A stretch of 64,000 nucleotides of DNA, from sequence record PV764938.1. One strand, given 5' to 3'. The notes below the pieces were generated by a model. It did not search any database. It saw only the letters and a list, made by a program, of their open reading frames with translations, and had not been told where the DNA came from. How positions within the stretch are numbered: position 1 is the stretch's first letter; each line of letters opens with the position of its first letter. Positions 7,777-32,654 of the stretch are shown here, one piece after another. The position numbers and the translations under genes were made by a program.

Positions 7777-8993
7777 TGACGACATTCAATTTCAAAGTAC
7801 GAGCCGTCGATAACAAGGGAGCTTTCGCAGATCGCGATTTCTCAATGGATGTCAGAAACACCGCCTACGACAAATTCGTAATGACTACGACTGAAGGTTA
7901 TATCGTAACAAGCGTTGACGGTCTGAATTGGCAATACCGTGCGCAGTACCTGAACGCCAATACCCTATTTGGTGATGTCGTATGGGGTCCTGGATTTTGG
8001 TTTGCTACAAAAACATCTACCACATATATTCGGAGCATCGACGGTATCAACTGGACTGAGCATTCATATCCAACAGGATATGCAATGTATCCAACCAATA
8101 TAGCATCGAACTATACGAATTCTCCTACTTTGATTCCGCGACCGTCAGTCGGTGATGGAAAGTTGATGATGCTGTTGGAAGTCGATACCGCTACCACAGC
8201 AGATCAGGCAAGGCATCTCGCATATACTACTGACGGGTTGACCTGGACTGTTGTACCGACGCCAGTCATCAAGAATACCAGTTATATCTATCGTGCTTGT
8301 TCTAACCAAGCATTGTTTGCGAATGATCGTTGGTATGTAAACCATTACGCGCAATCAAGTTGGCCGAATGCAGATGCCGCAATGAGATGGATTGCGAAGG
8401 ATTTCACTGGTGATTGGACTAACGTTCCACGTGCAAATGGCGCCACAGGTTTTGGTGGTGGCCATAATTTGCGTTTCGTAAACGGCACGTTCTTTACGTG
8501 GTCAAACTCAAACATTTACATGATGAGTGCAGATGGTATTAACTGGACCAGCTATGCAAGACCTACAACCAATCAATCCTATTATTACTTGCCCTGCATG
8601 TTGTACTGCAATGGCAAGATCGTTGCGTATCCTGACTCTTATAACTTTACTAGCGTTCAGGCTACCGCTGGTACGTGGGATAAAGTTCACACCAGTCTTG
8701 ATGGTATAACTTGGTCAACTGTTACGGTGCCTGCCTTGCCATTTACACATCCAAATATCGTAAACTATTCGACCCTATACAATACGGCTTCAGCTAACGG
8801 TCGTATCAGTGGAACCTACTACGGTGGTGTGATTTTGTTTGGCTCTAGAATCGTCAATAACAATGTCGCATATGGTGGATTGCTGACTAGTACAGATGGT
8901 GGACTCACATTTACTCGTAACGCAATTCCGTCGGTCGGTCTAGCCAGTGCCGTTGCTGTTAATGGTTTGGCATCTATGGGTCAGAGCGTTTAA
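7776..8993 (+). CDS. Asp-box beta-propeller protein (putative adhesin)
   Basis: Repeated (T/S)xDGxxW boxes (TSVDGLNW, RSIDGINW, YTTDGLTW, MSADGINW, TSLDGITW); N-terminal FNFKVRAVD...DRDFSMDV. Confidence 0.7.
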   Translation: MTTFNFKVRAVDNKGAFADRDFSMDVRNTAYDKFVMTTTEGYIVTSVDGLNWQYRAQYLNANTLFGDVVWGPGFWFATKTSTTYIRSIDGINWTEHSYPTGYAMYPTNIASNYTNSPTLIPRPSVGDGKLMMLLEVDTATTADQARHLAYTTDGLTWTVVPTPVIKNTSYIYRACSNQALFANDRWYVNHYAQSSWPNADAAMRWIAKDFTGDWTNVPRANGATGFGGGHNLRFVNGTFFTWSNSNIYMMSADGINWTSYARPTTNQSYYYLPCMLYCNGKIVAYPDSYNFTSVQATAGTWDKVHTSLDGITWSTVTVPALPFTHPNIVNYSTLYNTASANGRISGTYYGGVILFGSRIVNNNVAYGGLLTSTDGGLTFTRNAIPSVGLASAVAVNGLASMGQSV

Positions 8994-9003
8994 GGAGAAT
9001 ACA

Positions 9004-10221
9004 ATGGTAGACTTTAATTTCACAGTCCGCGCAACTGACGATATTGGTGCTTACACCGAACGCGACTTTTCCATTACCGTTGAAAATACACTAGTCAACC
9101 AGTTCATGGCGACAACGACGGCTGGACATATTTTGACCTCGGTGGATGGATACAATTGGGTACAACAAAACAACGTATATCCGGTAATCAACAACAATGC
9201 GTTTGGTCAAGTAATCAATGCGAATGGTTTCTGGTTAGTTGTTACGGGTCCAACAACTTACATCCGATCTATTGATTCGATTTCTTGGACCCAACATACT
9301 TTCCCGACCAATTACAATTTCGCACTCAATGGTGGTTCCTATTTGCCAACGTCCAAGCATCTGACTTATGGAGACGGTAAGATTGCATGTGTGTTGTTTG
9401 ATACAACCGCTTCAAACCAAGTTGCATTCTTTACAACGACTGATGGCCTATCATGGACACAAGGCGGAAACATTCCGCATCCGACTGGAACAAACCATTG
9501 GGTTTCGATTAGCAATGTAGAATACGGCAATGGTGTTTGGCTTTGCTCTCGTCGGGTGGCCACCGACTACATCAATACAGTCACGGAGATGGGTTATAAG
9601 AGTATTGATGGTGGAGCAACATGGACAGCGATGCCGTTCCCGACAGGAAATCAATCCACACTAGGATATGTCCGATTCACATTCATGAATGGTCTTTGGT
9701 ATGGGGCAGGCTTCAATAATGGTTACCTCTTGAGTAACGATTCAACAAACTGGTCCTATTATCCATATCCGACAACAAACTCATCAACTATGTTGTTCGT
9801 GAATGTAACTTATGCGAACGGAAAAATCTTCTGCTTCTCCGAATCCAGGGCAGTTATAACACTGGCCAATAACGGCGGTGACTGGCTAGCAACGTGGCAA
9901 AGCGTGGATGGTTTGACATGGTCCAAGGTTACTATGAGCTTTGCGGAAAATTCAGGAATATATTTCTCAAACTCCGCTCCCACTACTACATCGTACACCA
10001 GTTATACCACGAGTACAACAGGATCATCGCAAGCTTACAACTACCTGGCGTCGATCTTTCATAATGGTCTGTATGTGATGACCGCTAGAATTTCACCGGG
10101 ATCCGCAAATTTCAATAACGTTCTGGTAAGTGCAGACGGCGTAACTTGGCAACGAACTAATGTTGCAGCAAATTTGGGTATCACGGGAGTGGCAGCACTC
10201 CGATTGGATGACACAGTTTGA
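9004..10221 (+). CDS. Asp-box beta-propeller protein (paralog of 7776-8993)
   Basis: AAGGAG RBS before ATG 9004; seven Asp-box-like repeats; N-terminal FNFTVRATD...ERDFSITV. Confidence 0.7.
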   Translation: MVDFNFTVRATDDIGAYTERDFSITVENTLVNQFMATTTAGHILTSVDGYNWVQQNNVYPVINNNAFGQVINANGFWLVVTGPTTYIRSIDSISWTQHTFPTNYNFALNGGSYLPTSKHLTYGDGKIACVLFDTTASNQVAFFTTTDGLSWTQGGNIPHPTGTNHWVSISNVEYGNGVWLCSRRVATDYINTVTEMGYKSIDGGATWTAMPFPTGNQSTLGYVRFTFMNGLWYGAGFNNGYLLSNDSTNWSYYPYPTTNSSTMLFVNVTYANGKIFCFSESRAVITLANNGGDWLATWQSVDGLTWSKVTMSFAENSGIYFSNSAPTTTSYTSYTTSTTGSSQAYNYLASIFHNGLYVMTARISPGSANFNNVLVSADGVTWQRTNVAANLGITGVAALRLDDTV

Positions 10222-10226
10222 GGTAG

Positions 10227-10252
10227 AAAAAGCGGGCAACGCCCGCTTTTTT
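10227..10252. terminator. Bidirectional intrinsic terminator
   Basis: AAAAAGCGGGC-AAC-GCCCGCTTTTTT between convergent genes. Confidence 0.85.
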
Positions 10253-10267
10253 GTTTCTGTTGTCGGA

Positions 10268-10735
10268 TTACGCCGAGAGGATGAGATCCTGGTACTTGTC
10301 AGCGAACTGCTCGAAGCTCGGGGTGTTCAATACATCCAACTTAATCCGGCGCTTGGAGAGAAGATCGCGGAGTACAGCAACCACAACACCTGCTTCCGGC
10401 AACGTCGGCGGAACATCGCGCCAGTCTGCCTTCAGTTCCTTGTTGTTGAAGATTTCGCCAACCGCATCACGAGCAACTTCATATTCTGCATCACCCTTCT
10501 TGGGGCAAGTGAAGTTTTCGAGCATGTAGGAGATAATCTCTTCGAAGCTTACGACCTTACCGTCGTAATTTTCAACAATCGCACTGTGCAGACGAATGAC
10601 GTGCTTGATCTTGTCTGCATAAGTCTGCTTGAGAACCGCAGCAACAGCCGGCGAAGTAGCCGCAGCAACAATCGTTGCGCCAGCAAGTGCGCGACGGAGA
10701 AAGTTACGACGGGAAATGTTGCCGATGTTGCTCAT
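10268..10735 (-). CDS. Protein with twin-arginine (Tat) signal peptide
   Basis: MSNIGNISRRNFLRRALAGATIVAAATSPAVAA: SRRxFL motif, hydrophobic h-region, AxA cleavage site; GGAG RBS. Confidence 0.7.
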   Translation of the reverse strand: MSNIGNISRRNFLRRALAGATIVAAATSPAVAAVLKQTYADKIKHVIRLHSAIVENYDGKVVSFEEIISYMLENFTCPKKGDAEYEVARDAVGEIFNNKELKADWRDVPPTLPEAGVVVAVLRDLLSKRRIKLDVLNTPSFEQFADKYQDLILSA

Positions 10736-10868
10736 TGTATGCTCCGATTTGTGTTTGCGCTTTCCTGCGCTTCCGTATTTTGATAATAACAGAAACAGGA
10801 ATAGGCGCAACCAGAATCTTCCTGAATTTCAATTCAGGAAGACACATAGTTAACGAGCAGTTAATGAA

Positions 10869-11209
10869 TTAGAGTTGGATCATATCCAACAGTTCGGTGT
10901 AGGCTTCCAGCGTATAGTCGGCCATTGTATTGGATGCCCGCGAGCTGCTAGACGGACGGTGACGGGCACGGCTAATGACGTCGTTGAGTACGAACTTGTG
11001 GAGATTGGGTTCGTTGCGATCGTGTCGGCAGCGCCCTCGATGGACCCCACGTAATGCCGGAAGACGCGCAAACGGGCGGCAGCCTTCATTGCTTCATCGC
11101 CCCACTCGAAAGCGTAGGTCGGATCGTTGCCGAGCTTTTCGCGAAACTTTTCGATGACTTCCTGATCCATTTCGATCCGGCTTTTCATCTGACGGAGCAA
11201 GCGTTCCAT
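10869..11209 (-). pseudogene. Small hypothetical gene with an apparent 1-nt frameshift near 11007-11009
   Basis: After DTIATNP, shifting to the -1 frame gives NLHKFVLNDVISRARHRPSSSSRASNTMADYTLEAYTELLDMIQL-stop, with phage-like codons. Confidence 0.55.
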
Positions 11210-11332
11210 TTTCGATCTCCTTTGCCTCACTTAGAATAACAGCCCCACGTACCAGCTTCTTTCACCGACTCTCACGGTCTTTGGTCGCTTGGGTTTTATA
11301 CCGGACTTACCGAGCGGGCTGTTATCGTAAGT

Positions 11333-11356
11333 GAGGGGCCGAAGCCCCTACTTTTT
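11333..11356. terminator. Hairpin, probable terminator
   Basis: AGGGGC-CGAA-GCCCCT-ACTTTTT (CUUCGG loop on minus strand). Confidence 0.6.
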
Positions 11357-11717
11357 AGTGCTTGGTGTTGACCTTGCCCTTGGCCAGATCCGAGTAGTAA
11401 AAGCTGACCAGATCCTGCTTCAGCGTGGGGCAAAACGTTGCGCGAACCGCTTCGTTCTGCACCGACATGTAAATGTCGCCACCGTCACGACGTGCGCCGG
11501 TCTTTTCGGACCACTTCTGCATTGCAGCTTCGCGACCAGCGCGGCCCGGCATCGTCTTGAACTTGAGCTTGCCGTTGCGGCGACCCCAGAAAGTAACCAG
11601 CGTGTTTTCGATCATTGCCACGCCCCAGACCTTGTCGTTCTGTGCAGCACCGCCAGCGTTACCACGTGCGCCTTCATTGTAGTATGCGCCGAACTTTTCA
11701 ACAACTACGTTAGCCAT
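11355..11717 (-). CDS. Stand-alone WGR-domain-like protein
   Basis: NDKVWGV...LVTFWGRRNGKLKFK...AAMQKWSEK pattern. Confidence 0.5.
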   Translation of the reverse strand: MANVVVEKFGAYYNEGARGNAGGAAQNDKVWGVAMIENTLVTFWGRRNGKLKFKTMPGRAGREAAMQKWSEKTGARRDGGDIYMSVQNEAVRATFCPTLKQDLVSFYYSDLAKGKVNTKH

Positions 11718-11766
11718 GTGCGTGCTCCGATCTTTTGCGCTACGTTGTGTGCGCTTCCATGTTCTT

Positions 11767-11798
11767 AATGTAACATAGGAACAGGAATAGTCAACCAG
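11767..11798 (-). promoter_or_regulatory. Sigma70-type early promoter
   Basis: CTGG-TTGACT-N16-TACATT on minus strand. Confidence 0.7.
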
Positions 11799-11829
11799 AG
11801 TTGAGCAATCTTTTTCTGAATTTTTGAAA

Positions 11830-12555
11830 TTAAATTCCGTACTCGATGGAACCCCGGAAATGCCGGTTACTGAATCGACGGTAGGTTGAAACGCTGCCGT
11901 ATTTCAGGAGTGCCTCAACATGTTCGGGTGATTCCCGTAGGATCTTATTGAGGGTTTCATTAGCCTTCATCGGATCACGGAACTGCCAACGCGGGCTGAA
12001 CCATCCAATCTTAGCGACTTCCAATTCCTTACCGAACGCTTTTACCAGCATCTCGTTCATGCTGATTTCATCCCGTGTGAGGGGACGATTCTTTGCCGAT
12101 GGATTGGCCAAGAACGTATTGAAATGGGATTCTGCTTCGTGACGAGCTTGTCGACCTGTAATCTGTGCCTGTTTGAACTCAGTCTCTTCCATTTCTTGTC
12201 GTTCGAGCATCCGATTGTACTCATCGATTGCAGCTTGCTTCCGAGCTTCAAAGAAACGACGCATCTTACCCTTACTATCACTTACCGCGTCAGCATGAGC
12301 GAGCTTCTGTAGGATGAAGAAATTGCGGAAGTTGTCCTTGATCGTAGAATCGACCTCTCCAGTTTCCTGACGTGCCTTTTCGATTTCCTGGATTACGAAG
12401 AACGCATCCTCGGTCGGAATGGTCGGGCAGAGGCGAGAAAAGAACAGCGCAACGTTATAGACGGACTCATCCATCTTGCTCAGATACTCGTGCGTGTCGT
12501 CGATTTTTGCGGTCTTTGGTGTACCGAATTTATCGAAGTATTTTGCGAGTGCCAT
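11830..12555 (-). CDS. Hypothetical protein (coiled-coil rich)
   Basis: 241-aa ORF in a coupled leftward operon. Confidence 0.65.
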   Translation of the reverse strand: MALAKYFDKFGTPKTAKIDDTHEYLSKMDESVYNVALFFSRLCPTIPTEDAFFVIQEIEKARQETGEVDSTIKDNFRNFFILQKLAHADAVSDSKGKMRRFFEARKQAAIDEYNRMLERQEMEETEFKQAQITGRQARHEAESHFNTFLANPSAKNRPLTRDEISMNEMLVKAFGKELEVAKIGWFSPRWQFRDPMKANETLNKILRESPEHVEALLKYGSVSTYRRFSNRHFRGSIEYGI

Positions 12556-13205
12556 TATCTTTTGATCCCTGCGATAGCTTCACGCGCTTCTGCGGCTTTT
12601 GCTTTATCAGTGAATTCGTAGGTTGGGACGATCCAACCCTTCTTCACAAGTTTCACACCATATGTGCGTTGGAGTTCACCGACGTAGATGGCATCGTCTT
12701 CGATGTTGTCGACGGTGCCACTGTTGACTTTGTCCATGAAGGTGAGAAGCTCATCCTTGAACCGCAAAGCCGGTGGGATAACCGTGGGTATCATAATGCC
12801 CTGATTTGGTCTGGACACGGGTTTGTTCTTGATGGGTTCTTCGACAACTTCGATGACGTTGCGATTGTGGCCTTGAGCTTGCATTCGCTGCTCGTATTCC
12901 CACTGCGCCATGAGCTTTTTCTTTTCAAGCTCATGCTTGTATTCGTGCTTGGCACGAATCATGATCTTTTTCTCGAACGCCTGCGCCTGATCCGAATATG
13001 TGAGTTTCACATAGGTGAGCAGTCGGTTGACCATGTCTTGAACTGCCGTATCATCAGCAGCGTTTGTCAGTGCATTGACGAGGTAGGTCGCCTCAAATGG
13101 GCTGACCTTCCCCGAGAGTTCTGAGATGACCAGACCAAGTCCATACTCATCGGTAAAATCATCATTGAGGATTTGTCTGATGTACGGACTTAGTGGATCG
13201 TTCAC
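12555..13205 (-). CDS. Hypothetical protein (coiled-coil rich)
   Basis: 216-aa ORF overlapping both neighbours. Confidence 0.65.
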   Translation of the reverse strand: MNDPLSPYIRQILNDDFTDEYGLGLVISELSGKVSPFEATYLVNALTNAADDTAVQDMVNRLLTYVKLTYSDQAQAFEKKIMIRAKHEYKHELEKKKLMAQWEYEQRMQAQGHNRNVIEVVEEPIKNKPVSRPNQGIMIPTVIPPALRFKDELLTFMDKVNSGTVDNIEDDAIYVGELQRTYGVKLVKKGWIVPTYEFTDKAKAAEAREAIAGIKR

Positions 13206-13819
13206 CCAAATATCTCCTTGCGTAGCGTTGCCACGTCAATATAATCTTTGGTGCTCAGAGTCAAGCGTGCTTTGAAGGCTTGGTCACGATTGTGGAAGCC
13301 AAACATACCACGGAACTCACGGAAGGTGCGAGTCTTAATGTCGAGCAAGCGAAGCTGCGCCCGCGCTTCCTTGACTGTCTCCGACGTCGATACGCCCTTG
13401 GTCATGTCCAACTGCACGACGTATTCGATTTTGTCCGCGTAACCCTTCTTCGTTGCATTGTTCCAGAACTCACCGAAGTGGTAGGAACGATCGCGGATCT
13501 TCTTGGTCAAGAATACGTTCTTGACGTGAGTTGCCAGGCTGATAATACCGGCGTCCTTGTGGATAACTTCGGTCTTGACGATTTCGAGATCGTAGGGGAA
13601 AAGTTTGTCCATAGCCTCTTGCGTAAGCACCGAAGTATCATCGCCATAGAGCCGGCGGCTGATCTGATTGCTTACGAAGTATTCTAGACTATTGCGAGCA
13701 GTTGCTTCCGACTTGAACTCTTTGCCGCAGGATCCGAAACTTGACCAACCCTGGAAGTACGTGCCATTCTTTTTGTTTCTTATCTTGTATACGTAATGTG
13801 AAGTCGAAGTGGTCGACAT
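13202..13819 (-). CDS. Hypothetical protein, dispersed paralog family
   Basis: YVYKIRNKKNGTYF N-terminus; FGFHNRDQAFKARL C-terminus. Confidence 0.65.
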   Translation of the reverse strand: MSTTSTSHYVYKIRNKKNGTYFQGWSSFGSCGKEFKSEATARNSLEYFVSNQISRRLYGDDTSVLTQEAMDKLFPYDLEIVKTEVIHKDAGIISLATHVKNVFLTKKIRDRSYHFGEFWNNATKKGYADKIEYVVQLDMTKGVSTSETVKEARAQLRLLDIKTRTFREFRGMFGFHNRDQAFKARLTLSTKDYIDVATLRKEIFG

Positions 13820-13898
13820 TTGCTGCTCTCCGTTTGTTCGATCGTCTTTTGGAAGAGCACAAACCGAACCTAACAGAACAGCAAATCGAATTGCAATA

Positions 13899-14321
13899 TT
13901 ATTTCGTTAACTTTGCGAACGTGTAATAGGCCTTGGCCATACCGAGGGAACCAGCGAACTGGAAGTCCTGGAGGTCGACGATGACCTTCTCACGGACGCG
14001 GAGACTTTTGTGGACGCTATCGTCGTCGTAGAGCGTTGTGAGAACGCACACCGTAGATATAATAAACGACGGAGAAAAGATTTCCATGAAGCAAGCTTCG
14101 CGGTTTGCTTCGATGAATTGACTCACGCGGGAGAGCTGCTTAGCGTAGCGTTCGTTAGAACCCGTAAGCATTGCAACTTCAACATTGCCGACCATGTAAT
14201 GGGTGAAACCGTAACGCCAATTTCCCTTTGCAGCTTCCTCACGGCGTGAAGCAAAGATACCCTCGTCAACGAAGAAATGTTCGCGTAGGAACTTCTCCGT
14301 GACTTGTTTCAGTTCATCCAT
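13899..14321 (-). CDS. Hypothetical protein
   Basis: AGGGAG RBS before MDELKQ. Confidence 0.6.
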   Translation of the reverse strand: MDELKQVTEKFLREHFFVDEGIFASRREEAAKGNWRYGFTHYMVGNVEVAMLTGSNERYAKQLSRVSQFIEANREACFMEIFSPSFIISTVCVLTTLYDDDSVHKSLRVREKVIVDLQDFQFAGSLGMAKAYYTFAKLTK

Positions 14322-19360: not shown

Positions 19361-19878
19361 TGAGACACTTCGGTCATAGTATCGGAATCGCGGCTTTAAG
19401 CAGACCCCAGGCAACTGTGCCTGGGGCTGTTCGTTATTGGCGTATATTCTTCACTGAATCAAACGACGTTCCGTTCCAAAACAAATACATCACCATTGCT
19501 GAAATTCAGTTTAGACAAACTGTTGGAACACCTGCAACGATGCCCGGGACAGGAACAGCGTCGGCAAGTTCTTATTTCATTGATGCCGGAACCCATTATA
19601 CACCAGCAAATGGTGCAGATGGTAACTCAACCTCTTATTGGGTTACTGGTGCAGGTCAATTCGTCAACAGCTGGTGGCAATTTACGTTCAATTCGCCCGT
19701 GCTGATCAAACAATATACGATTCAGATATCACCTGGTGCAGCTGGACCACAACAGGCTCCCAAAGCCTTCCGTTTGCAATACTCATCGGACGGTGTATCA
19801 GGTTGGACAGACGTACAATCCGCTACAAACCAGATAAATTGGACTGCATCGGAAACCCGTACGTATACGGTGCCTTAA
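19360..19878 (+). CDS. Discoidin/F5-8 type C-like carbohydrate-binding protein
   Basis: RYWRIFF...IAEIQF...ASASS...WWQFTF...PKAFRLQYSSDGVSGWTDV; coupled (TAATG) to the fibre gene. Confidence 0.7.
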   Translation: MRHFGHSIGIAALSRPQATVPGAVRYWRIFFTESNDVPFQNKYITIAEIQFRQTVGTPATMPGTGTASASSYFIDAGTHYTPANGADGNSTSYWVTGAGQFVNSWWQFTFNSPVLIKQYTIQISPGAAGPQQAPKAFRLQYSSDGVSGWTDVQSATNQINWTASETRTYTVP

Positions 19879-20327
19879 CCCATACGGTATTGTCCAATAA
19901 AGTGAAACACCATATCCTCTAGATTCGACCAGATTCTCATGTCTGGTCGTTCTAGTCTCGACTGCACGATAACATCGAGTCGACGCTGATATTCCGGATG
20001 AGTTCCAACGACCAGCTTCTTGTCGGAGACCAAAAACTTACCGAGTTCCAGCAATGTGATCGGGCACAAAGTCTCCGAAGGGAACCAAAACAGGATCGTC
20101 TCAGATTTCTTCAGATGATCGTGTTCCCAGATGATCTGCTTCTTGCTTTCCTCATCACTGCCTTCCATGTTCCAAGCAGTACGACGCGGATTGAAGATCG
20201 TCAGATTGGTCAGCTCGTTGAGTTGAGCCGCAACTGGAGCCTGCCAGTCCGGGCAATTGGTGATACCGCCGGCCAGAAAGATCGTACGGGTGGTTTGTTC
20301 GGATACTTCCGGAGATATAATAATCAT
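19875..20327 (-). CDS. Nucleoside 2-deoxyribosyltransferase-like protein
   Basis: TIFLAGGITNCPDWQ...IFNPRR...QIIWEHDHL...ILFWFP..TLCPITLLELG. Confidence 0.8.
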   Translation of the reverse strand: MIIISPEVSEQTTRTIFLAGGITNCPDWQAPVAAQLNELTNLTIFNPRRTAWNMEGSDEESKKQIIWEHDHLKKSETILFWFPSETLCPITLLELGKFLVSDKKLVVGTHPEYQRRLDVIVQSRLERPDMRIWSNLEDMVFHFIGQYRMG

Positions 20328-20773
20328 TATCGTGCCTTTGTGGCAATCTCAACGATCGTGTTGATCATTTGAGTCATCACTTCGCTTGTGTAGGATTCGT
20401 AAGTGAAATCACTCGGTTCGTGGTCGACAAAGCTATGGTAACCATGTCCCTTTATTTGAATCAAATGCCTTGTGCGTTCATACTTACTTGTGGATTCGGG
20501 ACGAAACACAATGGCAAGGGATTTCAGCTTGAGTTGGTATACCTCATGAAGTTTCGAGTCGAACAAAACTTCCGCAAGAATACGTTGGGTCATAGCATAG
20601 TTATCAGCAAACCCAATTCTTGTTTCGACCCGTGAGTTGGGTAGATTGCCCTCGAGATACCACGTTAGCTCTCGCCCATTGATACTCGGGATAGACCGTT
20701 CCCCCAGAACAATATCTGGGTCCGTATACATACGGCGCGCCCAAAGCTTTTGTTCCAGGGGAATAGTCAACAT
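20327..20773 (-). CDS. Hypothetical protein
   Basis: 148-aa ORF coupled to both neighbours. Confidence 0.6.
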   Translation of the reverse strand: MLTIPLEQKLWARRMYTDPDIVLGERSIPSINGRELTWYLEGNLPNSRVETRIGFADNYAMTQRILAEVLFDSKLHEVYQLKLKSLAIVFRPESTSKYERTRHLIQIKGHGYHSFVDHEPSDFTYESYTSEVMTQMINTIVEIATKAR

Positions 20774-21420
20774 TATGCGGTTACCTTGATGCTCTTGCCT
20801 TCGTAGTCTTCACGCACGACTTCGTCGATGGTGCGGACAATACCACGGGTCAGACGGCGCGGAACTTCGACGTTGAAGCCGCGTGCGAGGAAGCCATCAG
20901 CAGCCCACTTCACACAGAAGTCAGCGGCCACGCCGATGATCACGACATCACGCACGCCATCCTCGAGCAGCGATTCGAAGAACGCATCGCGATCGTTCTC
21001 GAAAGCCAGCGGTCGACCATCGAGGCCCTTAACGAGGACCGAATCCTCTTCCCACATGTTGAAGACGCCCTTCTCCAGGGTAACGACTTCGATGCGGCCG
21101 TCGACGAGTTCCTTGTTATAGACGTTCTGCCAGCCCGGGGTCTTGTAGACGCAGTGGATCGGGAACTGCTTCGCTTCTTCCGAACCTTCATAGGTTTCCT
21201 TGTGGTGCGTATCGAAAGTGAACAGCACGCCGGCAGTTTCCTCGGGGGTCAGACCGTAGAGGTATTGGATTGTCGGTAGGACCGTCGACTGAGCATCCGA
21301 CACGTAGAGGGCGCCGTCTGGCATAACGAAGTCATACTGGGTGTCGATGACAACGACGAACTTCTTGGGCTTGGTGTTGTCGTCCATTGCGAGAACTGCA
21401 TTTACGAGTTCAGTGTCCAT
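20773..21420 (-). CDS. pncA: Nicotinamidase (isochorismatase fold)
   Basis: VVIDTQYDF..PDGALYV, TFDTH, FPIHC, EKG, IGVAADFCV (Asp-Lys-Cys triad). Confidence 0.9.
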   Translation of the reverse strand: MDTELVNAVLAMDDNTKPKKFVVVIDTQYDFVMPDGALYVSDAQSTVLPTIQYLYGLTPEETAGVLFTFDTHHKETYEGSEEAKQFPIHCVYKTPGWQNVYNKELVDGRIEVVTLEKGVFNMWEEDSVLVKGLDGRPLAFENDRDAFFESLLEDGVRDVVIIGVAADFCVKWAADGFLARGFNVEVPRRLTRGIVRTIDEVVREDYEGKSIKVTA

Positions 21421-21430
21421 TGTATTCTCC

Positions 21431-22027
21431 TTAGAGTTTTACCTTAAACGATTCCGGATAGGTGGATTCAATAAAGTCATGATTGACTGCAGGAACCCAA
21501 CGCTTCCATTCGTCGCTTCGGGTGGCCAAGTATGTACGGATTTCAGTGGCGCTCGGAAAGACGTTCTCTGAGCGGTCAATGATATGCAAGCGACGAAGCA
21601 CACCATTCTTCGTAAAATACTTGGATTCATTCTCGCGAGTGGCGAGAACTTTGTCTGTTGGATCACCGAACCAGAACATACCCTTGTACCACATTGCGTC
21701 GGCATGTGAACCAGTGAAATAGTCGGTGATCTCCGGAAGCTTCATGCCTTCCGCTTTGCTCAACACGTATTCGCACCACGTATTGGCGCCCTGTTCTGCA
21801 CCAATGTCCTGTAGGGGAATAATGCGAACACGATTCCCATAGACGTTGCGGAGCATTTCCTGACGATGAACTTGTGTCCAGGGATTGGCCGGCTCATTGT
21901 GGCGACCAGTCGATCCCAGACCAACAGACCAGGTCGAGAAATTCTCGTTCATCTGGTTCATCGTGTGGGTGTGGCCCTTGTGCAGGGGTTGAATTCTGAA
22001 AACGCCGTGTGCGTGACGTTCATCCAT
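21431..22027 (-). CDS. nadM: NMN/NaMN adenylyltransferase, NadM type
   Basis: FRIQPLHKGH (HxGH), GLGS, NPWT...RQEML, IPLQD, SATEIR; ATG at 22027 follows the Nudix stop. Confidence 0.85.
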   Translation of the reverse strand: MDERHAHGVFRIQPLHKGHTHTMNQMNENFSTWSVGLGSTGRHNEPANPWTQVHRQEMLRNVYGNRVRIIPLQDIGAEQGANTWCEYVLSKAEGMKLPEITDYFTGSHADAMWYKGMFWFGDPTDKVLATRENESKYFTKNGVLRRLHIIDRSENVFPSATEIRTYLATRSDEWKRWVPAVNHDFIESTYPESFKVKL

Positions 22028-22028
22028 C

Positions 22029-22670
22029 TTATTCGTCCTCGTCAGTACCCGGATACTTCCGTTCAGCCACTTCGAAAACCTTACGGAAGATTTCGTTGTG
22101 GTTGAAGGCCAGGGTATGATTGTGTACGTCATACACGGATTCGACCAGCAGTTCCTCGAGGTCGTCGCCGGCTTTCGCTTCGGTGATCGCATTGTTGTCG
22201 AGCATCACGAAGTAGCAGACGTTGACGACATGAGCACGCGGGTCGGTGTCCGGATTGCTGTGAACATGTGCGAGTTCCAGCTGATCTTCGGTGACCACCA
22301 GACCAGTTTCCTCGAAAATTTCACGAATTGCAGTCTGCTCGATGGTCTCGCCGGGCTTGATCAGCTTGTTGATTTCGGCTTGCTCTTCGGCGCCCAACAT
22401 TCCGTGTTCGGGCTCGATGAACTTGGAAAGGAACCAGTTCTTGATCGTGTAGAACACATCGCCGACCGTGGCGAAGATATCCTTTTCATCGACCTTCGCA
22501 TCGAGAAAACCGCCGGGAACACAAAGGAAGCCCGAGTACGCGCCATCCTTCCGTCCACGCCGCCCGAGAATAACGCGATCAGCGTTGGAGTTCCACGAGG
22601 ACTTGACCAGCAGAACGATCGTTGCGGTCACCGAGGGACGGGGGAAATCATAAACGTACTTGATCTTCAT
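22029..22670 (-). CDS. Nudix hydrolase (probable ADP-ribose pyrophosphatase)
   Basis: PRPSVTA, VPGGF, Nudix box GETIEQTAIREIFEETGL, DPRAHVV, AGDD, LAFNH; about 45-aa insertion before the box. Confidence 0.85.
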   Translation of the reverse strand: MKIKYVYDFPRPSVTATIVLLVKSSWNSNADRVILGRRGRKDGAYSGFLCVPGGFLDAKVDEKDIFATVGDVFYTIKNWFLSKFIEPEHGMLGAEEQAEINKLIKPGETIEQTAIREIFEETGLVVTEDQLELAHVHSNPDTDPRAHVVNVCYFVMLDNNAITEAKAGDDLEELLVESVYDVHNHTLAFNHNEIFRKVFEVAERKYPGTDEDE

Positions 22671-22691
22671 TTGTTGTCTCCTGTTTCTGGT

Positions 22692-22719
22692 ACATTAGCA
22701 CCAGAATCTATTGTGTCAA
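22692..22719 (-). promoter_or_regulatory. Sigma70-type promoter for nudix-nadM-pncA
   Basis: TTGACA-N16-TAATGT on minus strand, followed by AGGAG RBS. Confidence 0.7.
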
Positions 22720-22895
22720 CGCGCTTCGACGACTCTAAGCCTGTGAAGTGCATTGTCAACGTTCAGCCACATTTTTGCCTTCCAGGTGTCAACGGCATCC
22801 TGCCGGTTTGCAAATGGGCCGTATTCTTCGCGCTTGTCTTCATCCACCTTAGTGAATGTAAGATCCGTATGAACTCCACCTACGACTTTGAACAT
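22716..22895 (-). CDS. DUF4170-like small protein
   Basis: MFKVVGGVHTDLTF...EEYGPF...W...VDNA; AAGGAG RBS. Confidence 0.55.
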   Translation of the reverse strand: MFKVVGGVHTDLTFTKVDEDKREEYGPFANRQDAVDTWKAKMWLNVDNALHRLRVVEAR

Positions 22896-22905
22896 TTTGT
22901 TCTCC

Positions 22906-23154
22906 TTATATGCGTTCAAGCGTGTTGTAGTCGAAAGTGAACCCCGCAAATGAGGGTTCACTGGTAGTCAAAAGTATGCGAGTAGCCTGTAGCGGTGGGT
23001 CACCGAGGAGGGAAAATGGAGCCGCCGCATAAAGGTCCTTTGCTACTCTCGCAGCTTCTTCCGGTGTATCAACCTCAATCACCTCTGGATATTCGGGCGG
23101 TCGCGGCGAATAGCTACCAACTTCCAGGATATATCCGAAACGATATTTTGGCAT
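22906..23154 (-). CDS. Hypothetical protein
   Basis: 82-aa ORF coupled to the upstream gene. Confidence 0.5.
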   Translation of the reverse strand: MPKYRFGYILEVGSYSPRPPEYPEVIEVDTPEEAARVAKDLYAAAPFSLLGDPPLQATRILLTTSEPSFAGFTFDYNTLERI

Positions 23155-23456
23155 TACAATTGCAATCCTTCTGCGGTGCCCAGCACGTTGATCTTGCCTT
23201 CCTTGACCAGTTTGAGTATCTCGTCCAAAGTGAAGGAAGCATCGTACTCGCCTTCACCTTCTTCTTCATCGAGCCGGTCGAACTCTTCGCGTTCTTCGTC
23301 GGTGAGATTGAGAAGTTCCTTGATCACCAAGGGCTTCCAATCCATATCACCGAGGCTACCAGTAGTATTAGACAACCTGTCCCACTCGGCCTGGTCGACC
23401 ATGTAGAAGGTCATGTAATCGTCCCAGAGGCCAATCAAGAAAACGTCGTGTGCCAT
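23154..23456 (-). CDS. Hypothetical acidic protein
   Basis: GGGAG RBS before MAHDVFL. Confidence 0.6.
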   Translation of the reverse strand: MAHDVFLIGLWDDYMTFYMVDQAEWDRLSNTTGSLGDMDWKPLVIKELLNLTDEEREEFDRLDEEEGEGEYDASFTLDEILKLVKEGKINVLGTAEGLQL

Positions 23457-23460
23457 TGCT

Positions 23461-23712
23461 TCACTCCCACGAAGACCAGCAAGCTTGTTCGCCGGCGATT
23501 TCAATTTGGAAACGCGTCACGTAAGCGAGAAGATCAGTTACCTTCCCGAACTGCGCCTTCTCGCTTGCGCAGACGATGGGATCGACATCCTGGTCAAGCC
23601 AGCCGTTTTCGTTGAGCTGTTCATGCACGATGTCCCAAGTGTCCTTATCGATGAGCCGATAGTGGGCACTTGCGTCTTCGCGAGAATGTTCGATGAGAAG
23701 GTATGCTACCAT
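23461..23712 (-). CDS. Hypothetical protein
   Basis: 83 aa, GAGGA RBS, weak resemblance to the next gene. Confidence 0.6.
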   Translation of the reverse strand: MVAYLLIEHSREDASAHYRLIDKDTWDIVHEQLNENGWLDQDVDPIVCASEKAQFGKVTDLLAYVTRFQIEIAGEQACWSSWE

Positions 23713-23719
23713 TTGTTCC

Positions 23720-25042
23720 TCACACGGTTACTGGTGCATTTTCGACACCAGCGGTTCCGAAAACTCGGCGGTAACGCTCGATTTGTTCAGGCGTACCCGT
23801 TGCTTTCGTATAATTGTCGGACAGCTTGACAGCCGGACGACCAGCAGCTTCCTTGACCTTGCAGACCAACGAAATCGGAGCCAGTGCAGCTTCGGCTTCC
23901 TCATTGGGGTGGCAACCCCTGAAGTCGTTGGTCAGGAGCGTGCCCCAGCCAAAGCCGACGCGCATCTTGCCGCGGAATTCATTTGCGAGTTCCACAATGT
24001 TGTGGGCATCGAGACCGTCCGAGAACAGCCCAAGCTTGGTCGTCGGATCAACATCCTTGGACTTCCACCATTCGATTGTTTCGTAACCCGCAGTGACCGG
24101 ATCCTTCGAATCGTAACGGAAGCCGGTCCAGTCAGCGAGCCATTCCGGCGCATCCTGCAGGAACTGTGTCGTGCCGTAAGTGTCGGGCAGGGCGATCAAA
24201 AGCGCACCCGAGTAGGTGTTCGCCCACTTGATCAACACATCGTATTGTGCCTGCTTGAGGTCTTCGTCATTTTCGGCGAGCGTCGATAAAACCATCGGCA
24301 GTTCGTGTGCGTTGGTGCCCTTGGCTTCCAGATCGTGCTTCATAGCCAGGTAAGCGTTGGACGTGCCTGTGAACTTGTTGCCGAGTGCAGCCTTTGCCGC
24401 AGTCACTGCCCATTCCTGCCAGAGGAAGCTGTGACGACGACGTGTACCGAAGTCCGTGAGGTTCAAGTCGGGTACTTCGCGCAGAAGCTTGAACTTGTCC
24501 CAGAGCTTGGTCTTGGCACGTGCATACATGATATCGAGATCGAACTCGCTCATGTTGCTCATTGCTTTGCGATTGCGCAGTTCGTTGACCACGCTGAGCG
24601 CATAGATTTCCCAGAGCGTAACTTCGAGCCATGTGCCGCCGAATTCGACTTCGATTTCCGAGCCATCCTTGGTCGTGTTTTTACGCAAGGTGAACGATGG
24701 CAGCCGGAAAGTACGGAGATAGTCGATGAACTCGGGTTCGAACATTCCGCGCTTACCGTAGAACGTGTTACCCTGGAGCCAGATCAACTCCGAATTGGTG
24801 AAGCGGAGATTCTGCACGAATTCCAGCTGCTTGCTGAGCTCGTCGAAATCAACTTCATCGCCCAGCTTTACCGACTTGGTGCGGTTCTTCATTGCGAAGA
24901 CGACGGGAATATCCGCGTAGTGCTTGAAGATGAACTGCATCATCAGCAGCTTGTAGAAGTCCGTATCCAGGAGAGAGCGGACGATCGGATCCAGCCGATA
25001 GTTGTGATTGTGAACGCGCTGTGCGATATTGACCATGCTCAT
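23720..25042 (-). CDS. pncB: Nicotinate phosphoribosyltransferase
   Basis: SLLDTDFYKLLM, DFGTRRRHS, GTSN, GTNAHE (phospho-His), LPDTYGT, SDGLD, FGWGTLLTND, KLSDNYTKATG. Confidence 0.95.
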   Translation of the reverse strand: MSMVNIAQRVHNHNYRLDPIVRSLLDTDFYKLLMMQFIFKHYADIPVVFAMKNRTKSVKLGDEVDFDELSKQLEFVQNLRFTNSELIWLQGNTFYGKRGMFEPEFIDYLRTFRLPSFTLRKNTTKDGSEIEVEFGGTWLEVTLWEIYALSVVNELRNRKAMSNMSEFDLDIMYARAKTKLWDKFKLLREVPDLNLTDFGTRRRHSFLWQEWAVTAAKAALGNKFTGTSNAYLAMKHDLEAKGTNAHELPMVLSTLAENDEDLKQAQYDVLIKWANTYSGALLIALPDTYGTTQFLQDAPEWLADWTGFRYDSKDPVTAGYETIEWWKSKDVDPTTKLGLFSDGLDAHNIVELANEFRGKMRVGFGWGTLLTNDFRGCHPNEEAEAALAPISLVCKVKEAAGRPAVKLSDNYTKATGTPEQIERYRRVFGTAGVENAPVTV

Positions 25043-25248
25043 TTGCTTCTCTCCATACGTTTCGCCAGGCGTTCCGCTTCCTTAGCGCGCCATTCCCGGC
25101 TACTCTTACTTGCATTCAGGACATGAAGCAACCGAACAGGCAGTAAACGGTTAACAAAAATGTTGAACTCCATGAACCTGCGTTGTGCGGGTCTCGACCA
25201 TCTATTGGGATCGAACATCACAACCGGGTTTTGGTAATGCTTTGCCAT
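25039..25248 (-). CDS. Hypothetical protein
   Basis: 69 aa, overlaps the pncB start (ATGA). Confidence 0.5.
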   Translation of the reverse strand: MAKHYQNPVVMFDPNRWSRPAQRRFMEFNIFVNRLLPVRLLHVLNASKSSREWRAKEAERLAKRMERSK

Positions 25249-25254
25249 GTGGCC

Positions 25255-25584
25255 TCAAATGTAATTTCGGCAGCCGAACTGTTCGCTTTTGGTGTATTCG
25301 GCATGTTCTCGAATGAAGTTGAACACGTCGACTACAAAGTCGTTGGTGCCTTCGATGCCAATGTAGCTGGCATATCCAATTTCGGTTTCACGGCCACCGT
25401 CATGATACAGACCAGTGATCGGATTGTTGGCCGTGATGATGAGATCCTTTTCACCTTCGATGGTTGAGTAGCGATACCACTCCCAACCATCGTCGGTCAG
25501 CTCGCACGTAAGATCGTGGCGATCGATTAGCTCTTGCCAAACCGATGCCGAGATCTCCGTGAGGTCGAAGCCGGCTTGTGTCAT
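25255..25584 (-). CDS. Hypothetical protein
   Basis: 109 aa, coupled to the nadE stop (TAATG). Confidence 0.6.
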   Translation of the reverse strand: MTQAGFDLTEISASVWQELIDRHDLTCELTDDGWEWYRYSTIEGEKDLIITANNPITGLYHDGGRETEIGYASYIGIEGTNDFVVDVFNFIREHAEYTKSEQFGCRNYI

Positions 25585-26414
25585 TACGCGGCCGGACCGT
25601 AGGGAAGATCCCGCTTGTGCTGAGTCTTCAAGTAGGTCTCGATGATCTTTTCGGCCGCCGCAGCATCGATGGTCTTGCCTTCGAGGAAGTCATCGATTTG
25701 ATCATACGTTACACCATGTGCGACTTCATCCGGTAGGCCCGGATTATCGGTTTCAAGATCCGCAGTTGGAACCTTGTAGACCAGCGATTCAGGAGCCGCC
25801 ATGCGCGAAGCAAGTGCGCGAACCTGGCGCTTATTGAGGCCGGTGAGTGGGAGAATGTCGGCAGCACCGTCACCGAACTTCGTATAGAAGCCCATGATCG
25901 CTTCAGCGCAGTGGTCGGTACCGATGACCAGACCCTTTGTTTCGCCGGCGATCGCGTATTGTGCGATCATGCGAGCACGCGCCTTGATGTTGCCCTTGTT
26001 GAAGTCAGTCACGCCACCGAGAGCATCTGCCATCGCATCGACCGATGCCTTGATGTTAACGGTCTTGATCACATCGGGATTGATAGTTTCCAGCGAGAGC
26101 TGAGCTTCTGCTTCATCACGCTGCTCGCCATATGGGAGACGAACCGCGATGAATTGCGCGTCGTAGCCAGTTTCGCGAATGCGATTGACTGCCCACTGTG
26201 CAAGCAGACCCGCTGTAAGCGAATCAACGCCGCCGCTGATGCCGAGAACTAGCGAGCGTGTGCCAGTTGTACGAAGATAGTTTTGGAGAAAGTTGACTCG
26301 ACGTTCGATTTCAACATCGACATCAAAGTCGACGCCCATGCCGAGATCGTTGATAATTTCGAATTGAATGGGGAGAGTATTGTCAGCACGGCTGACGGCT
26401 TCAGTATGTGTCAT
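25584..26414 (-). CDS. nadE: Ammonia-dependent NAD+ synthetase
   Basis: [54 protein letters not shown]...[13 protein letters not shown]. Confidence 0.95.
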
Positions 26415-26476: not shown

Positions 26477-26518
26477 ATTCACTTCCACTTATGCAGTTAT
26501 TTATAAGTGGAAGGAATG
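26477..26518 (-). promoter_or_regulatory. T4-type late promoter TATAAATA inside an inverted repeat, upstream of nadE
   Basis: TATTTATA at 26498-26505 on + strand; 11-bp perfect arms CTTCCACTTAT/ATAAGTGGAAG. Confidence 0.7.
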
Positions 26519-26529
26519 TCAATGTCAAC

Positions 26530-27030: not shown

Positions 27031-27562
27031 CGATTTCCTCAATGAGGGTTTTAGCGTCGAAGCTGTGAGTCGTAGCGGAGATCGTCAAACGAAACTTGGC
27101 TGCATCTTCCTTACGGGCGAATGCAAATGTATATTCGGAATAACGATGGTCGGCCTTTTTGACCTTCAACATCCGCAGAGATTCTTTTGCTTCATCCCGA
27201 TACTTCGCCAGGTTCGAATCGATATGAACAATCCAGCGATATGTGTCGGTGGTGTTAGTCTTATCGAGTTTGTCCACGAATGCGGCGAAACTGTAGCCGT
27301 ATTGTTTTGTCAGTGAACTCATACGCTTACGACGGGAAACCATATCTTCGATCGAAGTCGCGTCAGCTTCTTTTAGTTCAAAAGCGACAAGCGAGCAATT
27401 CTTATAACGCTTGGCAAGATCATCATCACTGAACAATGCCATGTGGGAATTGAGGCTGCGAGAAGAGGTCCAAGACTTTCCGGACTTGGAGAAGCCGGGC
27501 CATGCACCACCGGTGCTGAATTCACCAGTCTTGTTATTACGGATTTTGAAAATGTAAGACAT
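27011..27562 (-). CDS. Hypothetical protein, dispersed paralog family
   Basis: YIFKIRNNKTGEF...GKSW; FAFARKEDAAKFRL. Confidence 0.65.
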   Translation of the reverse strand: MSYIFKIRNNKTGEFSTGGAWPGFSKSGKSWTSSRSLNSHMALFSDDDLAKRYKNCSLVAFELKEADATSIEDMVSRRKRMSSLTKQYGYSFAAFVDKLDKTNTTDTYRWIVHIDSNLAKYRDEAKESLRMLKVKKADHRYSEYTFAFARKEDAAKFRLTISATTHSFDAKTLIEEIDDSTAN

Positions 27563-27613
27563 TAAGGACTCCTTTGCCAGGAATCCTTAACAGAGCGTAA
27601 AATGGAAAGTCAA

Positions 27614-31455: not shown

Positions 31456-32211
31456 ATGGCCACCTTGATTTCGGCACGTCAAAAGCTATTGAAGGAAGTT
31501 GGATTGTCCTTGGGCGTGGGCATGGTCCGCGTTGAACTAACTCCCGACCACTATGAACTTGCATTTGATTTGGCCTTGGATCGCTATCGTCAGCGTTCCT
31601 CAAACAGCGTGGCCGAGCGTGTAACCTTTATCGATTTGCAACCCGAACAGACTCACTATGTGCTTCCTCAAGAAGTTACCCTGGTAAAACAGTTGTATCG
31701 TCGTGGAACTTCCGGAACTGCGAGTGGAACCGGAGTAGCCTTCGATCCGTTCGGTGCTGCATTTGTTAACCAGTCAAGTATTGGTCTAGGCTCCGGTAGT
31801 GGTTCTCTGTTGACATACGAGCTGTATGCGGGATTTCAAGAGACTGTCGGACGTATGTTTGGACTCTTCATCAACTATACCTGGGATCCAGCAAGTCATA
31901 CGCTTGTGATCGGCCGGCACGTAAAAGCTAAAGAAACTATCCTCGCCCAAATATATGTTGTGAAATCCGAGGAGGAGCTCCTTGCTGATCTTTATGCAAG
32001 ACCTTGGTTGCGTGACTACACAACTGCTAAGTGCAAAGTTATGCTTGGCGAGGCTCGTAGTAAATTCGCAAGTATTGTAGGTCCTCAAGGTGGTACAACA
32101 CTTAATGGTGACGCACTAAAAGCTGAAGGACTAGCTGAATTGGAGCGATTGGAGCTTGAAGTTGCTACGCAGGTAGAGCAAGATGCAGGCTACGGTTTTA
32201 TCATTGGTTAA
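31456..32211 (+). CDS. Neck protein, T4 gp13-like
   Basis: LG.GMVRVELT..HYE...WLRDYT.A.CK..LGEARSKF..I.GPQGGTTLNGDALKAEG; TAAATA at 31422-31427. Confidence 0.8.
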   Translation: MATLISARQKLLKEVGLSLGVGMVRVELTPDHYELAFDLALDRYRQRSSNSVAERVTFIDLQPEQTHYVLPQEVTLVKQLYRRGTSGTASGTGVAFDPFGAAFVNQSSIGLGSGSGSLLTYELYAGFQETVGRMFGLFINYTWDPASHTLVIGRHVKAKETILAQIYVVKSEEELLADLYARPWLRDYTTAKCKVMLGEARSKFASIVGPQGGTTLNGDALKAEGLAELERLELEVATQVEQDAGYGFIIG

Positions 32212-32358
32212 GCATATTACAATACGTGCATAAAAAGTCAGCAGGGTGCTGTTGCTTTTCTCACACACAAACACTATAAAAATTTACTGGCTGTTGTCGA
32301 AACTTTTTCCGCAGTCATGTGTTTCTGCATCGTAAACGCAACATGAGGAAGCTAGAAA

Positions 32359-32535
32359 ATGCAGTACGCTTATAACGCATATGTGACCAAGGTCTTAGAA
32401 GCGGTGGCGAATGAATCGTCCATGTCAGCTATCGAGGCCAAGCGTATGTGCAGGCAGAATCTCCAATTTATCGAGACTTCTTACCTGAACCTTGCTGATA
32501 CGCAATCGGTAGCTCGGACTCTTCTAGCGAACTGA
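32359..32535 (+). CDS. Small hypothetical protein (58 aa, absent from ORF track)
   Basis: GAGGA RBS; MQYAYNAYVTKVLEAVANESS... Confidence 0.45.
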   Translation: MQYAYNAYVTKVLEAVANESSMSAIEAKRMCRQNLQFIETSYLNLADTQSVARTLLAN

Positions 32536-32654
32536 TATTTCGTTTGCACCTTTGCATCTAACGTCGACTTACCTCGGAACCCACATTCCGAGGTCTTTTC
32601 TTGACTTGTTACCAAAACCTGTTAATTTACCGCGCAATTTCCAGGAGAATCATA

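Follow-up and report, generated by a model that had tools for sequence, protein, structure and literature searches.

INTRODUCTION

Reconstitution of nicotinamide adenine dinucleotide (NAD+) by phages is a recently recognized, broad-spectrum escape from NAD+-depleting immunity, and three routes are known. In NARP1 (Adps and Namat), NAD+ is rebuilt from its cleavage products by joining ADP-ribose pyrophosphate (ADPR-PP) and nicotinamide directly; in NARP2, described from Vibrio phage KVP40, Nampt and a NadM-Nudix type of Nmnat carry out classical salvage from nicotinamide and phosphoribosyl pyrophosphate (PRPP) (10.1101/2024.02.11.579819); and in NARP3, published in August 2026, PnuC and NadR restore NAD+ from imported nicotinamide riboside (PMC13464706). 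Here we analyze a cluster of five genes at positions 20773 to 26414 (minus strand) of a 64,000-nucleotide stretch of sequence record PV764938.1, hereafter the window, which belongs to the Sinorhizobium jumbo phage Phosso. From the identity of the genes, their intact catalytic residues and their linkage, we consider it likely, with a probability of roughly 0.7, that the five genes form a conserved phage module for NAD+ salvage and recycling through deamidated intermediates. A preliminary description of this stretch, whose account of NARP1 and NARP2 agrees with the literature, had proposed the cluster as a third NAD+ reconstitution route; with NARP3 published, that count is outdated.

Deamidated routes have been noted in phages before. 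A 2024 study, by annotation only, reported that salvage or Preiss-Handler pathways are complete in many jumbo phages, with pncB-nadD-nadE among the clusters, and it also mentions phage pncA (PMC11662467); two surveys that compare the NAD systems of viruses cover the amidated route only (PMC7824862, PMC9503650). Because these deamidated clusters and NARP1 to NARP3 have all been published, the pathway idea is already known. What appears to be undescribed is the architecture, namely a NadM-type enzyme instead of NadD, PncA and a Nudix hydrolase in a conserved gene order, together with its breadth. Our literature search returned no paper joining phage, nicotinamidase and NAD+ reconstitution, and none mentioning Phosso.

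Like the clusters of these NAD-jumbo phages (e.g., Kuafu_71), the Phosso locus has PncB and NadE genes of a jumbo phage in one cluster, for a route from nicotinate through nicotinate mononucleotide (NaMN) and nicotinate adenine dinucleotide (NaAD) to NAD+ (PMC11662467). It departs from their pncB-nadD-nadE arrangement in having a NadM-type adenylyltransferase, best matched by archaeal NadM structures, rather than NadD, and in adding both a nicotinamidase, with which the route would start from nicotinamide, and an ADP-ribose-type Nudix hydrolase; the five-gene architecture is not described in that report. An independent and unrelated huge-phage cluster for the deamidated route is found in the 735-kb uncultured phage LR756501.1, where positions 7968-14310 hold, in one run, PncB, an open reading frame (ORF) of 170 amino acids (aa) with no family match, NadE, a TonB-dependent receptor-like ORF and PnuC.

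The locus resembles NARP2 in that salvage would begin with nicotinamide and PRPP, the adenylyltransferase is of the NadM family and the Nudix part belongs to the same clade. Unlike NARP2, Phosso has no Nampt by tblastn and annotation: the step from nicotinamide to nicotinamide mononucleotide (NMN) is replaced by PncA and PncB, and amidation by NadE is added. NadM and Nudix are encoded by separate adjacent genes with Nudix upstream, rather than as a bifunctional NadM-Nudix enzyme of the NatV type with NadM at the N terminus, and counter-defense, proven experimentally for NARP2, is a hypothesis for the Phosso module. As in NARP3, NAD+ would be restored by ordinary salvage enzymes, but the substrate, the enzymes and the locus differ; a PnuC and NadR-like pair of the NARP3 type, which Phosso and phage Atu_ph07 each carry as well (PMC6102473), lies in Phosso outside the module, at record positions 37257-39212. 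As in NARP1, NAD+ would be rebuilt from the products of its cleavage; unlike NARP1, the module would break ADP-ribose down instead of reusing it whole. No Prs-like or Namat-like gene was seen in the cluster profiles or among the annotated products of Phosso, no profile search dedicated to them having been run. Bacterial and archaeal deamidating salvage (PncA-PncB-NadD/NadM-NadE) comprises the same four chemical steps, and the phage module differs from it in that genes of different sources are assembled in one place.

With a conserved deamidating module, the known reconstitution routes would gain a fourth candidate, and the theme would reach giant phages that infect rhizobia and agrobacteria in soil. 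The module also offers a natural case for asking why a costlier four-step route is kept, and the five-gene set could be included in anti-defense finders.

RESULTS AND DISCUSSION

A candidate NAD+ salvage module in phage Phosso

The 6.1 kb around the cluster are 100% identical to Sinorhizobium phage Phosso (PV764938.1), a circular jumbo phage of 469,473 bp isolated from soil on S. meliloti; a window position equals the record position minus 248000, and positions given below are those of the window unless the record is named. Profile and structure-relative searches bore out the gene content given in the preliminary description, i.e., NadE, PncB, Nudix, NadM-type and PncA-like, all on the minus strand, and the bounds 20773 and 26414 fall exactly on the first and last coding sequences of the set. 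The five genes had also been called motif intact, which holds for every one of them, as catalytic residues are present in alignments to solved relatives and in the homologue sets. Four of the genes already carry telling names in the deposited record (nicotinate phosphoribosyltransferase, ammonia-dependent NAD(+) synthetase, nicotinamide-nucleotide adenylyltransferase and MutT-like pyrophosphohydrolase), and the fifth, the PncA-like gene, is deposited merely as "hydrolase."

In the proposed pathway, the PncA-like enzyme would convert nicotinamide to nicotinate and NH3, PncB would form NaMN from nicotinate and PRPP, the NadM-type enzyme would form NaAD from NaMN and ATP, and NadE would form NAD+ from NaAD, ATP and NH3; the NH3 released by PncA may supply the NH3-dependent NadE. 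The Nudix hydrolase would most likely split ADP-ribose into AMP and ribose-5-phosphate; conversion of ribose-5-phosphate to PRPP we assign to the host, because no phage Prs is annotated. Such a module would keep NAD+ available in the infected cell and serve the NAD(P)-dependent enzymes of the phage, and it would also buffer the loss of NAD+ caused by defenses with NAD+-cleaving enzymes (NADases). We regard this chemistry as likely; the timing of expression of the module and any defense-related benefit we infer.

Family assignment of the five enzymes

PncB (23720-25042, minus strand; 440 aa), a type I nicotinate phosphoribosyltransferase (NAPRTase), scored 461 bits against PRK05321 (cut-off, 379) and 285.8 bits against the NCBIfam equivalog TIGR01514 (cut-off, 269.55). 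Its best solved relative is the NAPRTase of Agrobacterium tumefaciens, 1ybe, at 547 bits, with the next best at 175 bits; all six solved matches are NAPRTases with no Nampt among them, and the His of its GTNAHELP motif is invariant across 22 homologues. With the equivalog cut-off passed and 1ybe as the best relative, the choice between PncB and NadV/Nampt falls on a nicotinate enzyme, and a Nampt reading of this gene was ruled out. The nearest protein in species-representative genomes, at 58% identity, comes from an alphaproteobacterial metagenome-assembled genome of Hypericibacter, and the closeness to alphaproteobacterial PncB argues that the phage gene derives from the wider lineage of the host.

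NadE (25584-26414, minus strand; 276 aa) scored 381 bits against PRK00768 (cut-off, 250) and 209 bits against PF02540. It consists of a single NAD_synthase domain, an architecture that marks it as the NH3 type, and it matched canonical NH3-dependent NAD synthetases at 265 to 303 bits (303 for 3dpi and 295 for 4xfd) versus just 120 bits for the Francisella enzyme 3fiu, in keeping with the NH3-dependent NadE proposed at the outset. The motif SGGVDS is present, and the residues of SGGxDS are invariant across 23 distinct homologues. NadE thus qualifies, by sequence, as a predicted member of the family of NaAD-amidating NAD+ synthetases.

The NadM-type protein (21431-22027, minus strand; 198 aa), an archaeal-type pyridine-mononucleotide adenylyltransferase by its motifs and predicted fold, matches PF01467 weakly, at 25 bits. 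Its HKGH and S-x-T-E-I-R motifs align to the NMN adenylyltransferase (NMNAT) of M. jannaschii, 1f9a; its start at 22027 fits the lengths of its relatives, and G18, H19 and R164 are invariant among homologues. An AlphaFold2 model built from a 34-sequence alignment (predicted local distance difference test [pLDDT] score, 94.1) gave the stand-alone archaeal NMNATs 1f9a, 4yp7 and 1ej2 as its best Foldseek matches (target template-modeling score, 0.72 to 0.78), with the NadM-Nudix enzyme 2qjo ranking after these and NadD, PPAT and NadR lower. In archaea, which are without NadD, NadM works ahead of NadE. As annotation and tblastn found no Nampt, NadD or second phosphoribosyltransferase in the Phosso genome, the NadM-like enzyme is the sole phage candidate for the NaMN step beside NadE. 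Among the 26 lineages of the census described below, the NadM-like gene adjoins NadE in 23, a nicotinate phosphoribosyltransferase in 24 and Nampt in none, and this gene context suggests that the enzyme uses NaMN.

For the PncA-like protein (20773-21420, minus strand; 215 aa), of the isochorismatase family, the nine best solved matches are all nicotinamidases or related cysteine hydrolases, headed by 1ilw (E = 6e-13) and followed by 2wt9 and 3pl1. When aligned with 1ilw, the PncA of P. horikoshii, residues D26, K117, C169, D70, H72 and H89 fall on catalytic or metal positions; we take D26, K117 and C169 to be the catalytic Asp-Lys-Cys triad and D70, H72 and H89 the metal site (Asp-x-His...His). 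These six residues do not vary among 23 distinct homologues, apart from one truncated copy that has no C169. Relatives at about 50 to 55% identity are present in Sphingomonas and Novosphingobium chromosomes, where the source names them nicotinamidase/pyrazinamidase; the gene surroundings of one such Sphingomonas relative held nothing informative. The protein matches PHROG 19305 (E = 3e-40), a family labeled "unknown function," and its counterpart in Atu_ph07, gp236, is annotated as "hypothetical" beside gp237, a "cytidyltransferase" (L002:4407-5646). These labels can be sharpened, to nicotinamidase-like for gp236 and PHROG 19305 and to NadM-type adenylyltransferase for gp237, and the "hydrolase" of Phosso likewise.

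The Nudix hydrolase (22029-22670, minus strand; 213 aa; 45 bits to PF00293) belongs to the NadM-Nudix/NrtR (ADP-ribose-type) group, its solved relatives being 2fml, 2yyh and the NadM-Nudix enzymes 2qjt and 2qjo. The Nudix box REIFEETG is kept, with R116, E117, E120 and E121 invariant in 21 homologues, and ADP-ribose is most likely the substrate. The Nudix and NadM genes are two ORFs, and the stop of the upstream Nudix gene is one base away from the NadM start. A reading of the Nudix protein as an NrtR-type regulator was ruled out, as the similarity is confined to the Nudix domain (34.9 bits; cut-off, 400), the winged-helix domain is missing and the Nudix catalytic box is intact.

Conservation and replacement in place among phage lineages

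A census of the gene set was taken from the contigs of 41 NadM-like clusters and from 26 IMG/VR loci, which resolved into 26 distinct phage or metagenome lineages (NadM identity, ≤95%); genes were located by local tblastn, and the five were counted within 10 kb. Being seeded on the NadM-like gene, the census gives no frequency for the other four genes in its absence. The module proved to be conserved across many phage lineages: all five genes lie within 10 kb in 16 of the 26, usually on one strand in the order NadE-PncB-(DUF4170)-Nudix-NadM-PncA, and the four pathway enzymes are together in 17. Gene by gene, NadE was found in 23 lineages, a nicotinate phosphoribosyltransferase in 24, the PncA-like gene in 21 and Nudix in 20. 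Of the incomplete cases, at least three are truncated where the contig stops next to the NadM-like gene, and one more comes from a short contig of 7.7 kb. The module follows a lysozyme gene and a gp15-like tail-sheath stabilizer gene in about 14 lineages, as it does in Phosso; in others the flanks differ, as in lineage L006, where it adjoins PrkA/DUF444/SpoVR and ClpP genes. Its recurrence in many related giant phages argues that this gene set encodes a real pathway and is not an accident of the Phosso genome.

Two positions of the module have been filled by different enzymes for the same step. The NadE slot holds a form of 270 to 370 aa in most lineages and a glutamine-dependent CN_hydrolase-NAD_synthase fusion of 520 to 605 aa in seven; one of the latter, lineage L003, has PncB and NadM proteins 82% and 72% identical to those of Phosso. 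In three lineages, a distant NAPRTase-like enzyme, with family matches solely to other nicotinate phosphoribosyltransferase models, stands in place of PncB. Such replacements in the NadE or PncB slot are seen at L003:5696-7507 and L008:2413-3633 and in L012 and L027, and both kinds keep the deamidated route. Non-orthologous swaps for the same step between fixed neighbors point to selection on the pathway itself.

The NadM-like family comprises 41 clusters among 5.8 billion proteins, many of them on contigs of 130 to 480 kb, and a pattern scan of limited sensitivity found no cellular relatives in 185,579 species-representative genomes; this lineage of enzymes looks phage restricted. Of 50,697 phage records, 13 have PncB-like genes, 33 have NadE and 6 have the PncA-like gene, and the NadM-like gene is confined to Phosso and Atu_ph07.

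Weighing the proposed pathway and its adaptive role

Several observations weigh against the pathway as proposed. The NadM-like and PncA-like proteins fall far under the curated NCBIfam cut-offs, the latter reaching 32 bits with PF00857 and 33.7 bits with the PncA equivalog, whose cut-off of 174 was not attained. The Nudix box of Phosso is interrupted by a loop of 54 residues (54-107) between its Gly and first Glu, a stretch whose length in 21 homologues lies anywhere between 6 and 56 residues; the catalytic residues are nonetheless invariant. The characterized bacterial NadM-Nudix enzymes favor NMN. In a survey of viral genomes, NadM was always accompanied by NadV (PMC9503650), a generalization that the present module contradicts. 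Atu_ph07 keeps the order Nudix-NadM-PncA, with PncB 3 kb away and no NadE match, and lineage L009 has no NadE nearby; the module is therefore not always self-sufficient, and in such phages the last step would fall to the host. Finally, in Phosso and its close relatives the genes around the module are those of tail and lysis proteins, surroundings not suggestive of early expression.

Accepting the deamidated pathway, one may ask whether it was selected mainly for rebuilding NAD+ from the products of TIR/SIR2-type NADases, as a dedicated counter-defense and a fourth reconstitution pathway. This reading concerns the adaptive role and is compatible with the proposed chemistry; we hold it tentatively, as a real possibility at somewhat less than even odds. 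PncA and an ADP-ribose-type Nudix would act on exactly the two products of NADases, nicotinamide and ADP-ribose, and NARP2, with ordinary salvage chemistry, overcame Thoeris and DSR2 (10.1101/2024.02.11.579819), its NadM and Nudix parts being kept in the Phosso module. The apparent restriction of the NadM-like lineage to phages and the conserved, near-consensus sigma-70-like element at NadE described below, which would permit transcription by unmodified host polymerase, point the same way. Against this role stand the higher ATP cost of a four-step route compared with NARP1 and NARP2, its need for host PRPP, the position of the module among structural genes, and the other NAD-linked genes of Phosso, which fit a general NAD economy.

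Those other genes lie outside the window and comprise an NAD kinase (record 31839-32642), the PnuC (PF04973) and NadR-like (350 aa, AAA_28) pair, a LigA-type NAD-dependent DNA ligase (record 140903-142930) and an annotated ADP-ribosyl glycohydrolase (record 410856-411707), in addition to three further Nudix genes; ribonucleotide reductase, dihydrofolate reductase (DHFR) and thymidylate synthase are annotated as well. The kinase, the ligase, the PnuC and NadR-like pair and the three enzymes of nucleotide synthesis speak for a module serving as general metabolic support only, supplying NAD(P) during a long, resource-intensive jumbo-phage infection to the ligase and to NADPH-dependent nucleotide synthesis. 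In line with this, jumbo phage PA5oct raises expression of the host pncA-pncB1-nadE operon during infection (PMC7318152), and NAD-jumbo phages have been portrayed as diverting NAD+ for their own use (PMC11662467). The host lineage, however, has the route itself, and phage PncB is nearest to alphaproteobacterial PncB, so complementing a missing host pathway is unlikely; furthermore, PncA and an ADP-ribose-type Nudix suggest recycling of breakdown products over net synthesis. As an exclusive explanation, metabolic support is plausible and still short of an even chance, and the support for a general NAD(P) economy is no weaker than that for a dedicated counter-defense. In the most far-reaching form of the counter-defense argument, which we consider less likely than not, a dedicated fourth pathway of soil and freshwater jumbo phages would consist of the five genes, with the Nuc_deoxyri_tr2 gene discussed below as a possible sixth; it would neutralize NADase immunity by recycling the two cleavage products via deamidated intermediates, with a phage-specific NadM lineage turned into an NaMN adenylyltransferase.

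A different objection concerns the NaMN step. If the NadM-like enzyme were specific for NMN, drawn from the ligase reaction or from imported nicotinamide riboside, host NadD would have to adenylylate the NaMN made by PncB, and the phage route would be incomplete. The NMN preference of bacterial NadM-Nudix enzymes noted above would agree with this, as would the constant pairing of NadM with NadV in the viral survey and the presence of an NAD-dependent ligase and PnuC in Phosso. The neighbors of the NadM-like gene in the census, which are NadE and nicotinate phosphoribosyltransferase and never Nampt, speak for NaMN instead; the NMN and nicotinamide riboside branch has a NadR-like enzyme of its own in Phosso, and the closest folds are those of stand-alone archaeal NadM, which acts upstream of NadE. 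We therefore judge an incomplete route improbable. An order of steps as in Francisella, where NadM and a single-domain NadE likewise occur without NadD and where NadE, as an NMN synthetase, would amidate NaMN to NMN before adenylylation by the NadM-like enzyme, is very unlikely given the far higher scores of NadE with canonical enzymes than with 3fiu and the classical, NaAD-amidating, glutamine-dependent fusion that fills the same slot in seven lineages.

Promoter-like elements and transcription

About 90 nucleotides (nt) upstream of the NadE start lies a promoter-like element that matches the consensus, TTGACA-N17-TATAAATA (26498-26528, minus strand). It is found at the orthologous place, amid diverged sequence, in lineages L003, L004, L006, L021, L022 and L033, and the 469-kb record holds three copies where about 0.02 would be expected from base composition; the other two copies stand directly before tRNA-Met and tRNA-Ser genes (record 20184 and 452817, both on the plus strand). 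Near-consensus sigma-70 sites in general showed no enrichment in the region or the genome (10 sites versus about 6 expected), so that the evidence lies solely in the conservation of the NadE site. Farther upstream, just downstream of the gp15-like gene, a terminator-like hairpin with a 14-bp stem and a T-rich tail (27560-27592, minus strand) would part the late genes from those running into the NAD module. A separate promoter upstream of NadE probably serves the module, which the element and the hairpin together suggest to be a transcription unit of its own, readable by host polymerase.

At the ribosome-binding site there is a conserved CCCAT...GGTGAGG. A riboswitch or structured leader upstream of NadE was ruled out: Rfam gave no match at E ≤ 1, nine lineages shared no consensus structure, and the z-score for folding was -0.46. 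A second promoter-like sequence, TTGACA-N16-TAATGT (22692-22719, minus strand), lies directly upstream of the Nudix gene, with a palindrome of 7-bp stem (22685-22706) overlapping its -10 hexamer; as the palindrome occurs once in the window, it was ruled out as a repeated operator.

Neighboring genes

Six small or unfamiliar ORFs, all on the minus strand, were absent from the preliminary description: four separate Nudix from PncB, a fifth lies between PncB and NadE, and the sixth is downstream of PncA. Three of the first group (22906-23154, 23154-23456 and 23461-23712) have no family match in Pfam, NCBIfam or PHROG; the fourth (22716-22895) matches DUF4170 at 57 bits, and a DUF4170 gene lies between the phosphoribosyltransferase and Nudix genes in 10 of the 26 lineages. 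The 109-aa ORF between NadE and PncB (25255-25584) has no match in the same three collections and no counterpart in related loci. Most of the 213-nt gap between this gene and PncB is occupied by an unannotated, candidate ATG ORF of 69 aa (25039-25248, minus strand), which overlaps the PncB start by 4 nt. Downstream of PncA, a 148-aa ORF (20327-20773) without a match in a Pfam search has weak relatives at the same place in lineages L003 and L033.

Just outside the bounds of the cluster, the next gene (19875-20327, minus strand) encodes a Nuc_deoxyri_tr2 protein (PF15891, 83.6 bits), and members of this family come after PncA in 12 of the 26 lineages. Its structural model (pLDDT, 93.4) has the fold of nucleoside deoxyribosyltransferases and DNPH1, a Glu (E94) in the motif PITLLELG is invariant among 41 sequences, and the only solved relative is the uncharacterized 4mcj. 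On an unrelated 129-kb contig, a family member (L049:6001-6471) directly follows PnuC, NadR and NAD kinase genes, with NrtR nearby; other genomic contexts of the family were uninformative. The gene is a possible sixth member of the module, and a reasonable guess is that its product may be an NAD-linked N-glycosidase, or transferase, acting on a pyridine nucleoside or nucleotide.

Elsewhere in the Phosso record, among dozens of phage tRNA genes, positions 446731-446806 are annotated as "tRNA-Pyl(cta)," with an amber-reading anticodon.

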